Assembly (NCBI GenBank): GCA_025594325.1
Contig: JANHCV010000007.1
Location: forward strand, 930,001 to 994,000
Direction of reading: 5' to 3'
DNA length: 64,000 bases
Origin: Blastocladiella emersonii ATCC 22665
Lineage: Eukaryota; Fungi; Blastocladiomycota
The notes below the pieces were generated by a model, which worked only from the letters and a program-made list of their open reading frames with translations, made no database searches and was not told where the DNA came from. Below are positions 49,896 to 58,234 of this stretch, piece after piece. The position numbers were made by a program, and so were the translations under genes. Positions within the stretch are counted from its first letter, which is position 1, and each line of letters starts with the position of its first letter.

Positions 49896-51786
49896 CTGCT
49901 AAGACGCTCCCCTGCCCTGACCCCCCGTACCCTGACCTCTTGTCTCTGAAAAGTTCCACTTTTCGCTCAAAAAGGGGCAGTGTATATAGATACCTACCTG
50001 TTTTTGAGCGAAAAGTGGAACTTTTACGGTGAACGGCTTCATAGCAGTCGCTCGCGGCAGGTGGTCAGGGACTGGCTCGGGGACTGGCTCGGGGACTGCT
50101 CACAGATCGACTTGCAGCTGTGCTCAGGGACCAGACCAGGGAACTCTGTCAGTGGGTAGCCGCAGCTGCGCTGCTCTTCGTCTTGCTGCGCTCGCCGGCC
50201 GCCGCCGACCGCTCGGGGTAAGCAATGGTCAGCCTGAGTGGTTGGTCAGGGACGGGCTCAGGGATCTGCTCTCGGACTTGTTGTCACGGTTCAGTGATCC
50301 GACAGCTCGGGCTGGTGGCGCGGGCTGGTGGCGCAGTCCCTCATAAGCCGAGCGTTGCCCTCGCTCTCCCTCTCTCTTGTCATTCGTGATACAAAGTGTA
50401 AGGTGCCGAGGGGGAGGGTCTTGTGCCACAAGGAATGACTAGCTGGATAATGAAGGATTGTATCACGAATGACAAGAGAGAGGGAGAGCGAGGGCAACGC
50501 TCGGCTTATGAGGGACTGCGCCACCAGCCCACGCCACCAGCCCGAGCCGTCGGATCACTGAACCGTGACACTTGTCTTGCAGATCAACTCGCAGATCGAC
50601 TTGCAGCCGTGCTCAGGGACCAGACCAGGGAACTTTGTCAGTGGGTAGCCGCAGCTGCGCTGCTCTTCGTCTCGCTGCGCTCGCCGGCCGCCGCCAACCG
50701 CTCGGGGTAAGCAATGGTCAGCCCAAGGGGTTGGTTAGGGACAGGCTCGGGGGTCAGGTCAGGGACTCACTCCTCAACCACTCGCCCCCTCCCTTCCACC
50801 CACCCTCCCGCCCACCTGCTTCGGCCTTCAGCCTCCATCCACGTGTCGTGTTCCCTAAGGGAACACGACATTTGAATCCAACATATTATTAACCACCCGG
50901 GGTAAGCAACTGGGTCTCACGTGGTTACCCCGAGTGACTGCCGCCGACCGCTCGGGGTAAGCAATTGGTCAGCCCAAGTGGCAGTGGGTCAGCCCATGTT
51001 GTATCCCTTAAGGGATACGACACGGCGGCCTTGTCGTCGTCCACCACTGCCACGGCCTTGGTCCTGCCCTTGTCCGGTGCGCCGCTGGCCTCGGCCAACA
51101 CCAACGTGGCGCCGGCCTCGTCGTCGTCCGCCGCTGCCACGGCCTCGGTCCTGCCCTTGTCCGGTGCGCCGCCGGCCTCGGCCAACACCAACGTGGCGCT
51201 GGCCTCGTCGTCGTTCACCGCCGCTGCGCCGCGTCGCCCGTCAACCAACGTGGCGCCAGTCCCGCCGGCCTCGGCCGCTGCGGCGCGTCGACCCTCGACC
51301 AACGTGCCGCCGGCCTCGTCGTCGTCCGCCGCTGCTGCGCCGCGTCGCCCGTCGACCAACGTGGCGCCGGCCTTCTCGTTCACCGCCGCCACCACGGCCT
51401 CGGTCCTGCCCTTGTCCGGTGCGCCGCCGGCCCTGACCCCGCCCTCGTTGCCCGCGGTTCGCCGACCGGCGCGCGGTGTGGCTCGCCCCGCCCAGTACCC
51501 GCCCGACGGACCGCTCAAGGAGGTCCTCCCGCCCGCCTGCACGCGCAAGCACCAGCGTGTCGTGTCGCCCAAGGCCGAGGCCGAGGCAGACCCCTTCCCT
51601 CTTCTGCCGCAACCGCCCTCACTCGCTGCGATCGGCAGTGTCAGAGGGTTTGCTGCCCCGAAGGCCAGGGCAAAGCGCCGTCACTACTACGACGAGGACA
51701 ATGACGACTACGTGTGCAGTCAGCAGGTGGATGATGACGACTGATTTCTTTTTTTCATACATTATGTTTTGTTCCGCGGTATCAAG
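49896..51786 (-). repeat. Right arm of 1891-bp inverted repeat
   Basis: Reverse complement of 33249-35139; mirror-image ORFs are visible in the ORF track. Confidence 0.95.
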
Positions 51787-53568: not shown

Positions 53569-54484
53569 CGCGCCGAGCTGTACGTGGCGCCCGTCGAGGC
53601 GACCGTCCCCGCAAATACAGCGGGGACCAAGGCCGCGACGGCGGCGCGGGCGGCCAGGGCCGCGGCCGCGGCTGCTGCTGCTGCTGCTGCGTCCGCGTCG
53701 GCGCCACCACCCGGCGTCTACCGGCCGCCCACGCCGGCTCCCACGGCCGCCGCGGCTACCAAGAAGACGAGGGCGAAGAAGGCGTGAGAGTTGAGCGCGC
53801 GACGCTTCTTAATCTATCTTGATACCGCGGAACAAAACATAATGTATGAAAAAAAGAAATCAGTCGTCATCATCCACCTGCTGACTGCACACGTAGTCGT
53901 CATTGTCCTCGTCGTAGTAGTGACGGCGCTTTGCCCTGGCCTTCGGGGCAGCAAACCCTCCGACACTGCCGATCGCAGCGAGTGAGGGCGGTTGCGGCAG
54001 AAGAGGGAAGGGGTCTGCCTCGGCCTCGGCCTTGGGCGACACGACACGCTGGTGCTTGCGCGTGCAGGCGGGCGGGAGGACCTCCTTGAGCGGTCCGTCG
54101 GGCGGGTACTGGGCGGGGCGAGCCACACCGCGCGCCGGTCGGCGAACCGCGGGCAACGAGGGCGGGGTCAGGGCCGGCGGCGCACCGGACAAGGGCAGGA
54201 CCGAGGCCGTGGTGGCGGCGGTGAACGAGAAGGCCGGCGCCACGTTGGTCGACGGGCGACGCGGCGCAGCAGCGGCGGACGACGACGAGGCCGGCGGCAC
54301 GTTGGTCGAGGGTCGACGCGCCGCAGCGGCCGAGGCCGGCGGGACTGGCGCCACGTTGGTTGACGGGCGACGCGGCGCAGCGGCGGTGAACGACGACGAG
54401 GCCAGCGCCACGTTGGTGTTGGCCGAGGCCGGCGGCGCACCGGACAAGGGCAGGACCGAGGCCGTGGCAGCGGCGGACGACGAC
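53569..54484 (+). repeat. Direct repeat copy 2 of 33000-33915
   Basis: Contains a promoterless 5'-truncated copy of the JmjC C-terminal coding end (...KKTRAKKA*) followed by the sequence that forms the outer inverted repeat. Confidence 0.92.
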
Positions 54485-55155
54485 AAGGCCGCCGCCACGT
54501 CAGTCGAGGGCTGCACCGCAGCGGCGGCGGACGACGACGAGGCCGGCGCCACGTCGGTCGAGGGCTGCACCGCAGCAGCGGCAGCGGCGGCGACTGAGAT
54601 GACCGACGGGCCCGCCGTGTTGGACGAGGTTGACGCGGCGGCGGCGTTGTGCCGAGGGCCACCACGGACGCCCCGGAAGTTGGCGCGCGGTGCCATCGAC
54701 TGGTCGACACCATCAAGGGTCACTGGCCGCGTCATGTCGGACAGGCTCGCAAAGATGTGCACGGCACGGATCGCCTCGAGGCCGTACGTGGCCTTGATGG
54801 CCTCGACCGTTGGGAAGCTCAAGCCAAAGTTAGCCGAGCGCGTGAGCCGGGGATGCTCGTTCTTCCAGTTGGCCTGCGCACGGTGCGGGTCGTTCCACGA
54901 GCTGCAGCCGCGCCACGCGTCGCTGTAGGTGAGCGAGAAGGCGACCCGGCGGCCGCCCTTGTTCATGATGTACTCATGCGCGACCACGTCGTCGAAGTGG
55001 GCCTGGACCGGCTCGCCCACGCCGGCCGCGGCGTTGGTCTTGGCCTTGGCCTGCTTCTTCTTGGCCTTGCGCTTCGACTTGTTCGGGGCGACGGACGCGT
55101 CGGCGGGCTCCTCAACGGCCATGGTCTCGTCGGCGGACTCCTTGTCAATGGCCAT
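53860..55155 (-). CDS. 431-aa orphan protein divergent from Fanzor; its 3' half is duplicated in both viral inverted-repeat arms
   Basis: Long ORF with a globular-looking N-terminal part (YIMNKGGRRVAFSLTYSDAWRG...) and S/A/P repeats. The C-terminus ...YVCSQQVDDDD* also appears at 33291 and 51744. Confidence 0.5.
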   Translation of the reverse strand: MAIDKESADETMAVEEPADASVAPNKSKRKAKKKQAKAKTNAAAGVGEPVQAHFDDVVAHEYIMNKGGRRVAFSLTYSDAWRGCSSWNDPHRAQANWKNEHPRLTRSANFGLSFPTVEAIKATYGLEAIRAVHIFASLSDMTRPVTLDGVDQSMAPRANFRGVRGGPRHNAAAASTSSNTAGPSVISVAAAAAAAVQPSTDVAPASSSSAAAAVQPSTDVAAALSSSAAATASVLPLSGAPPASANTNVALASSSFTAAAPRRPSTNVAPVPPASAAAARRPSTNVPPASSSSAAAAPRRPSTNVAPAFSFTAATTASVLPLSGAPPALTPPSLPAVRRPARGVARPAQYPPDGPLKEVLPPACTRKHQRVVSPKAEAEADPFPLLPQPPSLAAIGSVGGFAAPKARAKRRHYYDEDNDDYVCSQQVDDDD

Positions 55156-55247
55156 GGCCTCGTTGTCAGGTCGCGCGACGAGGCGGCCGACAAAGAGGAC
55201 GGACGAGATGGAGCCGACCCTGAGTGCGTCGAGGCGGTGGGTGAGCG

Positions 55248-57886
55248 TTGAGCCTCAGCATCGCCCACGACAACCAGCTCGTCGTCGCCAACCCCGGGCC
55301 CGACTACGTCGCCGCGCCAGCGGCCGTGCCCGTCCCGCCGCCCGTGCCCGCCGACCACGTCGTGACGCCGCCCATCCGGCCCGCGGGCGACGTGCGCGAC
55401 TTGGTGCTCATCACCGGCCCCGACTACCGCACGTGCCGCGGCCCCAGCCTCGGTGAGGTGTTCGTGCGCGCCATGAAGCTCGTCAACGTCTTCATCGACA
55501 ACGAGGCGCGCCCGGGCATCAAGCGCGGACTGCAGTCGCTCACCGACCGCTCGCGCGTGCTCACGGCCCAGCTGCCCGACTACCTGTGCGTCATCATCGA
55601 GATGCGCCTCGAGGCCAGCCGGCCCGTGCCCGACCTTGACCAGCGCCTCATTGAGAAGGCTCTGCGGCGGCTGCAGCGGGACCCGCCGGCCCCCCGAGAC
55701 GCGCTCGACCACGAGCTCGCCACCACCCTCGTCCGCTACGAGCAGCTGCGCGATGACGGTGGGTCGCGGCCGCGGCCGCACACGCGCCACCTCAGCCACA
55801 TGGCCTCGTCCATGGCGCGTACCTACTCGCGCGAGATCAAACGCGTCGGCTGGGACCACTCGGACCGGTACATTGAGACGCTCGCCAAGGCCCTCGTCGC
55901 CAAGGAGAGTGCCACGGTGTACTCGGAACGCCTCGCCGAACTTCAACGCGAGTGGACCGTCGCCCGCCAGCAGGTTGACCCCGACCCCGACGCGCCGGCG
56001 CCCATCAGCGGCAAGACGCTCCGCGCCCGTCGTCATCGCGCCGCCAAGACCGCCGGCCACGAGCGCCGCGCGCAGGCGCAGGCGCAGGCACCGGTTCCCA
56101 AACCCACACCCGCCGCGGCCGGGCGCGGCGGCCCTCGTCCTCACCCGTCGCCGCGCGCGCGCGCCGCTGCCCGCAAGGCGGCCAACTCGACGGCGTTCTG
56201 GGCGGATCGTCGCGCCGCGGTCGCCGGTGAGACGATGCCGTGCCGCCTGCCGCGCGAGCTCCAGTTCTCCAAGGCCGAGCGCGAGGCGCGCGTCCGCGCG
56301 GCCAAGCACCGTGTCCGCGCCTACGCCGGGATCAACGTCCCGGGCCTGTCGTGGCTCGACCGTCTCGTTCGTCTTCGAGATGCCCGTGAGTACTTTGTTG
56401 ACCGCGAGCTCGTGTCGGCCTCGACGCCGCGCCCGCGCATGGTCCCCAAGCTCGAGGTGCGCGGCCGGTTCTTCAACGTGCCGTTTGAGACGCTCATGGC
56501 CGTGGCCGGCATGCCGGTCCACGTGCGCCGGGATCCGCGCACGCCAGCGCCGGGGCGAGGGCATTGGCCCGCCCGACCTCGCGCCGACTACGACATCATC
56601 GCCGCCGACGAGGACCCCGTCGCGGTCGCCGCCGCCCGTGTCCGCGTCGCCACGTACGAGCTCCAGGACGGGCGGACGGCCAAGGCCTACTGGGACTACG
56701 TGCTGCACTGGTCGTCCATGTACGTCAAGCACTCGCTGTGCTGGCGCCTTCGACCTGGCGCGCAGCCCATCAACCAGTTCATTGGCTCGATCAAGACGGA
56801 CGGGTACTCGGCCCGCGTCCCCATGTACCGCGACGGCATCTACCTGGTCGAGGGCGCCCCGTCCAAGGCCGCCACCGGTGCACTCTCGTCCGCAGCGCTC
56901 CTCGCTCGCGCCCTCGAACCTCCTCTTGTACCTCCCGCTGTCGCCCCAAACGACCCACCCCTCGTCGTCTCCCACCCTCCTGATCATCGCGTCGCTCGTC
57001 GCCGCGGCGCCGGTACCAACATGCACGACGGCGACATCGACGTGGCCGAGGGCATCGACCGCATCACCTTCGTGGACCCCGGCGCCAACTCGCCCATCAC
57101 GGCGTTCACGGTCGCGCTCGTCCTGTTCTTCTACATTGTCGCCGTCCTCGAGCGCATCGCCATGATCCACGCCGACGGCACGCTCGACGACGACGCCCGC
57201 GCCGCCGAGCTCGACGCGGTGCGCCCGATCCTGCTCGACATCGCCATGACCAAGGAGGGCATCAACCACCGGTTCGACGAGATCACGGCGTACGAGTGGC
57301 AGCACAAGACGGGCGCCCGCCTCAAGTCGAGTCGGTCGCGGATGTGGCGTGCCGAGTACGGGCTCGACGACCACGACGAGGACCGCTCGAGGGCGTCGCA
57401 CCCCGCCGCCGACCCCGCCGCCGACCTCGGCGCCAAGATCGCGGCGAACGCGGCCGCCGAGGACGCGACGCTGGCCGAGGCGTGGCGCACGCGCGTCGGC
57501 CGGCTCGGGTTCTTCACGCTCGGGCTCCGGCAGAAGATGTTCGACAGGCTCACGCACGCGTTCAAGGGCGCCTACGTCCTGATCGGGCACCAGTTCCACT
57601 ACGGCGGCGTTCGGGTTCATCGTCGTGGTCCCGTCGCTGAGCTCGTCAAGCAGCTTGTGCGCCGTGGCACCAACATCTTCCGCGTCGACGAGAACTACAC
57701 GTCGAAGCGGTGTCCGGTCTGCTCCGCGCTCTCGACGCCGCAGCAGCGCGCCGACGGCGAGTGCGACCTCATCCAGTTGCGCGCGTGGGGCACCAAGCAC
57801 TGCCCGCGGTGTCGCGCGACGTTCGGCCGCGACCGCAGCGCCGCCTTTGGCCTGCTGCTGACCCACGCCCATCGCCTTCGGTTTGC

Positions 57887-57922
<36 letters not shown>

Positions 57923-57926
57923 GTAG
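55248..57926 (+). CDS. Fanzor (eukaryotic TnpB-family RuvC RNA-guided endonuclease), Fanzor1-like; exact start uncertain
   Basis: FIGSIKTDGYS; RuvC-I FVDPG (D at 57075); RuvC-II VDENYTS (E at 57690); zinc finger CPVC...CPRC; RuvC-III RDRSAAFGL (D at 57831). About 890 aa with no internal stop. Confidence 0.88.
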
Positions 57927-57989
57927 TTTGTGCCGTTGTGTTCCCTTTCTTTCCCTCTTCTCTCCTCTCCTCTCCTCTCCTCTCCTTTC

Positions 57990-58190
57990 CGCTTCTTCAT
58001 CTCTTCCTGGCTGCTCAACAACCTCGAAACCCTCGTTGGAGACGGCCCCTGCGTCTCAGGTGCTTCATTGCGCCTTCGGTCCTACGGGATCACCTCGTGG
58101 TGCCGACCCACATTGGTCACGGCCAATGTGGTCACAGGTCTGTGTGCCTGTCAAGTATGTAAATGGCCTGCGCATCCAGCGTACTCCATT
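57990..58190 (+). ncRNA. Candidate Fanzor omegaRNA scaffold
   Basis: Non-coding interval just 3' of Fanzor with stems at 58039-58057, 58105-58133 and 58134-58151. The position matches known TnpB/Fanzor omegaRNA placement. Boundaries are inferred. Confidence 0.45.
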
Positions 58191-58234
58191 AATACAGCAC
58201 ACTAGGGAGGAACGTAGGGTAGAGAGGAGCACGA

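Follow-up and report, generated by a model that had tools for sequence, protein, structure and literature searches.

A probable multi-copy Fanzor1-type element in the early-diverging fungus Blastocladiella emersonii, with one copy that retains a full-length frame

Background

The Fanzors are eukaryotic RNA-guided nucleases, and among members of solved structure the one closest to the gene considered here is SpuFz1 of Spizellomyces punctatus (PDB 8GKH, 9CEU-9CEZ). SpuFz1 is a solo gene of elements that carry 30-nt inverted repeats and no transposase, and its omegaRNA lies at the 3' end, abutting the right end of the element (PMC10432273). ISDra2 TnpB (PDB 8H1J, 8BF8, 8EXA) has its guide RNA encoded at the right end of its element; it is a protein of ~400 amino acids (aa) that keeps the canonical glutamate of the RuvC-II motif and travels with TnpA in IS200/IS605. 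Fanzor1 is further carried by DNA transposons with Mariner, Helitron, IS4, Sola and MuDr hosts; the loci of GtFz1, NlovFz2 and MmeFz2 are reported without inverted repeats and without an associated transposase (Saito et al., PMC10432273). In the Blastocladiomycota, Fanzor1 is already known from Allomyces macrogynus (AMa; PMC3627910), and it is also known from chytrids. Here we describe a Fanzor1-type gene of Blastocladiella emersonii ATCC 22665, encoded by an 892-codon open reading frame (ORF) at 55248-57926 (+) of a 64,000-nt stretch of DNA, hereafter the window (assembly GCA_025594325.1, contig JANHCV010000007.1, positions 930,001 to 994,000). Judged by its sequence matches and its modelled fold, the protein is a Fanzor1-type TnpB homologue with a RuvC domain and an inserted zinc-finger (TNB) domain, and the ORF very probably encodes the nuclease of a mobile element that carries Fanzor1 and is present in multiple copies in this genome.

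The Blastocladiella protein resembles SpuFz1, its best match in both profile and structural comparisons, in the G-S-I-x-T-D-G motif, the glycine that occupies the former RuvC-II site, an alternative glutamate within (D/N)E-x-(Y/K)-TS-x-x-C, the zinc finger and the RuvC-III aspartate, and also in being a solo gene with a candidate omegaRNA block at the right end of its element. It differs in being ~250 residues longer, with an N-terminal extension that cannot be aligned, in having a glycine (DPG) where SpuFz1 has N385 (DPN), in the serine that replaces the RuvC-III asparagine of the window copy, and in the lack of detectable inverted repeats; its identity to SpuFz1 in structural alignment, ~20%, agrees with the word 'divergent' used in a first-pass annotation made from the letters of this DNA alone. 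With ISDra2 TnpB it shares the RuvC and TNB core (Z 9.8) and, by way of the candidate block, the likely site of the guide RNA; unlike that protein it has lost the canonical RuvC-II glutamate, is far longer and has no TnpA beside it. GtFz1 is a weaker match (E 0.018, Z 8.5), and the Fz2 proteins form a separate clade. The AMa Fanzor1, compared by description only, comes from the same phylum and falls under the same motif definition, whereas the single match in Allomyces javanicus is weak (E 4e-4) and confined to the C-terminal 77 residues.

Family assignment by sequence and structure

The zinc-finger part of the protein is recognized directly by Pfam PF07282 (Cas12f1-like TNB), which scores 31.1 bits against a cut-off of 26.3 over aa 803-867; the NCBIfam guided_TnpB model stays far below its cut-off (16.5 vs 100), as one would predict of a eukaryotic protein that is only distantly related. 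When 1.84 billion representative proteins were scanned exhaustively with HMMER, 23 relatives, counted as half-identity clusters, were recovered, at least 19 of them from B. emersonii, with one from A. javanicus and three from metagenomes. A profile of 18 family members found SpuFz1 (8gkh) as its top PDB match (E 3.8e-9) over two stretches, one holding G-S-I-x-T-D-G and the other running from RuvC-II to the first CxxC, followed by TnpB (ISDra2 TnpB, E 3.3e-4), Cas12f, PpFz1, ApmFz2 and GtFz1. The paralog profile was needed for this detection: a single-sequence phmmer search against the PDB gave only spurious matches of SPX domains to the helical N-terminal stretch. A second, word-indexed protein search, made with the alignment, returned just two known paralogs, low-complexity words of the N-terminal region having probably dominated it.

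A full-length AlphaFold2 model has a predicted local distance difference test (pLDDT) of ~90 for aa 590-880, is poor for aa 1-180 and drops below 50 for aa 1-132. Foldseek placed SpuFz entries at ranks 1-4 for this model (E 4.6e-7 to 1.1e-6) and also matched PpFz, AsCas12f and TnpB. A second model, covering aa 440-892, aligned to SpuFz1 residues 362-623 in VIA-align with Z 13.5 and a root-mean-square deviation of 3.2 Å over 226 residues; the top five entries were all Fanzor1, and the rows that followed all Fanzor or Cas12. As modelled, the RuvC fold with its inserted TNB superposes on the solved Fanzor and TnpB members. The first-pass annotation had read the RuvC/TNB layout of TnpB/Fanzor nucleases off the translation and named a profile search and a structural comparison with SpuFz1 as its checks; PF07282, the paralog profile, Foldseek and VIA-align all bear that layout out. 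Placement in Fanzor1, rather than Fanzor2 or the IS607-type TnpB proteins, is suggested by the best matches (SpuFz1 and PpFz1 ahead of ApmFz2) and the G-S-I-x-T-D-G motif shared with SpuFz1, and not by a tree.

The active site

The motifs named in the first-pass annotation (TDG, VDPG, VDENYTSKRC, CPVC, CPRC and RDRSAA) do all lie in the single 892-aa frame. TDG (aa 517-519, 56796-56804) belongs to a longer motif, N-x-F-x-G-S-I-x-T-D-G-Y-S-x-R-V, which profile alignment finds in common with SpuFz1 (HFEGSITTDGASVSV). VDPG (aa 609-612, 57072-57083), within FVDPGANSP, supplies the RuvC-I aspartate D610 (57075-57077), which falls in the near-invariant column D171 of our family alignment A7 and within the part superposed on SpuFz1 362-623. 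At the canonical position of the RuvC-II glutamate there is instead G780 (VLIGHQF, 57585-57587), and 35 residues past it stands E815 (57690-57692) within VDENYTSKRC (aa 813-822, 57684-57713), near-invariant in alignments A4 and A7 and aligned to LDEYKTSSVC of SpuFz1. The zinc finger of the TNB (57711-57812) is formed by CPVC (aa 822-825) and CPRC (aa 852-855) and coincides with the PF07282 match; in A7 three of its cysteines, C383, C413 and C416, are invariant and C386 is nearly so. The RuvC-III motif RDRSAAFGLL (57828-57857), with RDRSAA at aa 861-866 (57828-57845), contains the catalytic D862 (57831-57833), and S864 and G868 stand in it at the places of conserved asparagines. Across the family alignments D610, G780, E815, R861 and D862 are nearly invariant.

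This arrangement is that of the Fanzors, in which the canonical RuvC-II glutamate is replaced by glycine or proline and an alternative glutamate lies downstream (Jiang et al., PMC10530073); Bao and Jurka (2013) gave conserved G500 and E536 as hallmarks of Fanzor1 (PMC3627910). As G780 and E815 match these hallmarks, the first-pass annotation was right to assign the D-E-D triad, here D610, E815 and D862, with its glutamate inside VDENYTS, and the zinc finger it described is present with all four cysteines kept. The protein also follows the Fanzor/TnpB motif defined by the same authors, D-X(125,275)-[TS]-[TS]-X-X-[C4 zinc finger]-X(5,50)-RD (PMC3627910), with D610, 207 residues, T818-S819, C822/C825/C852/C855, 5 residues and R861-D862.

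Coding character of the reading frame

The frame runs without an internal stop through 892 codons to a TAG at 57924-57926. The G+C content of the window, ~65-73%, lets long open frames arise by chance, and we therefore tested its coding character directly. Its GC is 0.73, 0.52 and 0.88 at codon positions 1, 2 and 3 respectively, and the third position reaches 0.90-0.98 within the first 170 codons, a signature matching those of the neighbouring aldehyde dehydrogenase gene and of the convergent gene downstream, and the high-GC phase changes from that of the minus-strand gene at 53860-55155 to that of the Fanzor frame at ~55200-55250. Given the codon-position GC and this phase switch, the whole 892-codon frame is a genuine coding sequence; together with the homology and the fold, the codon-position GC rules out a chance ORF in GC-rich DNA. 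An antisense ORF of 985 aa (54963-57920, minus strand) overlaps it, with codons beginning opposite the G+C-rich third positions, and is probably a composition shadow of the Fanzor frame.

The N-terminal extension, aa 54-239 (55407-55964), contains the motif TGPDYRxCRGP at aa 56-66 and has its homologous counterpart in aa 88-273 of P0007, a divergent paralog (BLASTP E 1e-9), with further matches by tblastn to loci L006 and L003. At the other extremity the ORF ends in a (GQ)n tail (57880-57926) encoded by a (CAAGGT)n microsatellite; the corresponding repeat of the paralogous locus L001 is (CTCAAG)n, coding for (AQ)n, so that the protein ends in a variable repeat rather than in a conserved tail.

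A multi-copy element with a common right end

A blastn comparison with five paralogous loci revealed two close copies on other contigs that share homology at the DNA level, L001 (window 56016-58197, 86% identity) and L002 (window 55929-58196, 84% identity). They have a right limit in common, at 58196, ~270 bp past the stop codon; on the left each stops at a different point within the ORF. Both sit between unrelated host genes, and the paralogous copies L001-L006 in general are flanked by cellular genes only. L001 and L002 are truncated or frameshifted, and the window copy is the only member of its subfamily seen here with its full length retained.

The limit at 58196 is also visible in the strain's own reads, as assembled into Logan unitigs: a unitig covering 57804-58196 is identical to the window, stops exactly at 58196 and has ~2x to 6x the depth of the flank, depending on the run. 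It overlaps the flanking unitig by 30 nt, in which L001 and L002 differ from the window; the extra depth together with this mismatch implies that one more copy or several share the terminal sequence, over 30 nt or more, next to another flank. Such a copy sharing the 3' end did not surface in the protein searches, and it may be unannotated or devoid of an ORF. In the window copy, L001 and L002 alike (3/3), the right end lies shortly past the stop of a convergent host gene, at 38, 34 and 61 bp respectively (58196 vs 58235 in the window, 11144 vs 11178 in L001, 9946 vs 10007 in L002), which suggests a preference for, or a tolerance of, insertion just behind such genes.

The inverted repeats and partner transposase seen in Fanzor1-carrying DNA transposons are both wanting at this locus. 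With up to 3 mismatches allowed, the final 16 nt have no reverse-complementary match anywhere in the window, and when the final 84 nt of the element are aligned locally the score is no better than that of shuffled sequence. The flanking called genes (ClpS/UBR1, two without a Pfam family, and Aldedh) carry no transposase family on record, as the first-pass annotation, which saw no transposase beside the ORF, had noted. Since other Fanzor loci also lack both features (Saito et al., PMC10432273), their absence is not decisive for the family. We considered ends of the Helitron or IS200/605 type and regard them as unlikely; the terminus of the element (...ATTAATACA) is without a CTRR end. We likewise rejected the head-to-head gene of 431 aa as a second gene of the element, as no Pfam family covers it and none of the other Fanzor copies has a homologue of it nearby.

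The 3' non-coding block

Between the stop codon and the right end two segments can be told apart: a C/T-rich spacer (57927-58037), with 34-45% identity between copies, and a conserved, hairpin-rich block (58038-58196, ~160 nt) that ends at the right end of the element. Identity of the window to L001 and L002 is 88-89% over 58038-58135, ~60% over 58136-58165, where both versions of the sequence nonetheless form a hairpin, and 77-81% over 58166-58196, and it drops to 15-31% past 58196. The fold of the block has a z-score of -3.9 against shuffles, and the consensus structure comprises 55 pairs in five to six hairpins, among which a few changes affect one side of a pair and a single compensatory change affects both. 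A search of Rfam with the block gave no match. From its position and conservation, we posit that the block is a candidate omegaRNA scaffold. The flank beginning at 58197 (58197-58216), which is unique in the window, would then supply the guide, by analogy with the omegaRNA arrangement reported in PMC10432273.

Integrity of the window copy and competing explanations

The most serious competing explanation accepts the family assignment and holds that the window copy is dead or dying, a Fanzor1 relic with an open frame and no working nuclease, its start or 5' frame lost and its RuvC-III motif damaged. We consider this only a little short of an even chance. The first-pass annotation had called the ORF intact, and this stands insofar as no stop interrupts the 892 codons and the catalytic triad and cysteines are kept; it does not extend to the RuvC-III asparagine, which is lost, or to the 5' end. 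The codon at 55248 with which the listed ORF starts is not an ATG, being a TTG directly 3' of an in-frame TGA (55242-55244), and the earliest in-frame ATG is codon 76, at 55473.

Several observations weigh against a functional element at this locus, and some of them are those that favor a relic. No in-frame ATG precedes codon 76, though conserved coding sequence lies 5' of it, as the homology of aa 54-239 to the N-terminal region of P0007 indicates. The GenBank gene model, of 897 residues (55208-57926) and bearing neither a Pfam family nor a functional name, instead uses an ATG at 55208 that is one base out of frame with the long ORF, and regains the frame by an implausibly short 25-nt GT..AG 'intron' (55228-55252) in which the TGA lies; removal of 55228-55252 is the sole single 25-nt GT..AG gap that gives the deposited protein. 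The annotation pipeline of the genome paper was ab initio gene prediction (PMC9730499). Gene models of paralogs also use 'introns' that excise frameshifted stretches, and the paralogs looked up in this genome are all labelled 'hypothetical protein' in GenBank. Logan unitigs cover 54525-56065 with zero differences and zero gaps, so that the frame offset is a property of the genome itself rather than an error of assembly. Further, two conserved asparagines of RD-x-N-A-A-x-N are replaced in this copy alone (N864S and N868G); N864 is invariant across the family at a level of 90% or more, N868 is asparagine in the family consensus, and both changes are derived on the branch of the window copy. The 5' 800 nt of the locus are single-copy in the strain by Logan unitigs. 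On the side of the element, its left end can be bracketed only between 55156 and ~55400; on the side of the RNA, the covariation support for the block is thin, coming from three sequences, and public RNA runs included none containing the locus, whether as mRNA or as omegaRNA.

Estimates of selection speak in both directions. The ratio of non-synonymous to synonymous substitution rates (dN/dS, omega) is 0.56 against L001 and 0.54 against L002, and parsimony gives a branch omega of ~0.6 for the window copy, L001 and L002 alike; unpolarised, the window branch is thus not below those of the truncated or frameshifted copies, which also weighs on the side of a relic. Polarised by the outgroup loci L003 and L004, the same branch carries 16 synonymous and 19 non-synonymous changes, which at a site ratio of 2.9 corresponds to an omega of ~0.4. 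Neutral drift on this branch would be expected to have produced 2.6-5 stops, and none is seen (P 0.005-0.08), so the open frame speaks to some degree for constraint, or for recent descent from a lineage that was active. The catalytic triad and the four cysteines are retained, and translation from Met76 would keep the whole TnpB-like core, including the entire region alignable to SpuFz1, the homology to which begins near aa 365; because of this the copy could be active. That it still yields an active nuclease appears possible on these sequence data, if somewhat doubtful.

As to the kind of substitution, the private changes in L001 and L002, counted against window 56016-57923, are strong-to-weak in 20/27 and 53/85 cases and transitions in 22/27 and 60/85, and 17/24 of the C>T/G>A changes on the window branch are at CpG. 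The pattern in all three copies looks like deamination-type decay.

A second possibility is domestication, whereby a Fanzor-derived protein would have acquired a cellular role and left the mobile element. The solo gene among host genes, the lack of a transposase and of detectable inverted repeats, and the host-like GC at codon position 3 would all fit it. Nevertheless, dispersed copies at unrelated loci share the 3' non-coding block and a precise end, some copies are truncated or frameshifted, omega is far higher than is typical of conserved host genes, and the exhaustive search disclosed no series of orthologues in other fungi, all of which makes domestication improbable. Finally, large DNA viruses often carry Fanzors (PMC10432273) and a presumed virus-like insertion (about 33.2-51.8 kb of the window) ends 3.5 kb off, yet the aldehyde dehydrogenase gene and the 431-aa gene stand between, L001-L006 have only cellular genes around them, and the window holds no Fanzor homology elsewhere, so that viral cargo can be considered a most improbable source of the gene.

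Proposed working of the element

On the reading that we favor, of a Fanzor1-carrying mobile element, the block at 58038-58196 and the adjacent flank would be transcribed together as an omegaRNA. The protein would bind this RNA, whose flank-derived guide would locate a matching site next to a target-adjacent motif (TAM), and the single RuvC center would cut that site. Such cutting might help the element to persist or spread, as has been proposed for TnpB and Fanzor. As the element has neither a transposase nor inverted repeats, any movement would have to draw on functions provided in trans, or on copying through repair.

The copies anchored at the right end, with their varied internal left starts (55929 in L002, 56016 in L001) and their ends behind convergent genes, could also mean one-ended copying. 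We regard it as unlikely, though worth stating, that Blastocladiella harbors a lineage-specific, highly diversified Fanzor1 clade that spreads by such right-end-primed copying; candidate processes are transposition of a rolling-circle-like kind, or copying by repair that the nuclease triggers and that begins at the omegaRNA end. If true, it would set the clade apart from the known Fanzor1 vehicles, which move by cut-and-paste.

Significance

The literature searched contains no paper pairing Fanzor with Blastocladiella, and the Saito et al. supplements searched do not mention the pairing either. Three traits are slightly unusual: how large the radiation within this genome is, how long the N-terminal extension is, and that truncated copies are anchored at the right end and have neither repeats nor a transposase. 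Every divergent clade of Fanzors may offer a scaffold for genome editing, with an RNA and a TAM of its own, and the protein from this high-GC, early-diverging fungus is a useful entry for the catalogue and a reasonable candidate for biochemical testing. The window copy leaves knowledge of the Fanzor family itself unchanged; the more interesting point is how Fanzor elements spread without a transposase or repeats, for which the right-end-anchored truncated copies provide material.

Other features of the window and of the paralogous loci

The aldehyde dehydrogenase gene is bracketed by a 683-nt inverted repeat with arms 100% identical (51104-51786 and 53818-54500). Its right arm extends into the 431-aa gene (53860-55155, minus strand) at the 3' part of that gene, and Logan unitigs there have raised depth; the repeat is either very recent or an assembly issue.

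Two of the paralogous gene models are composite. The P0001 model (L001 8001-10882) fuses an alpha/beta-hydrolase (PF07859) to a 5'-truncated Fanzor, with a frameshifted stretch spliced out, and is probably an annotation chimera. The P0005 model (1233 aa; L005 7992-9041 and 13516-15393) joins a frameshifted remnant of the present subfamily to a second, much more divergent Fanzor of 26-28% identity, which has the more canonical motifs GIDPGVNN...VNEAYTSKRC...NRDRNAALNI.

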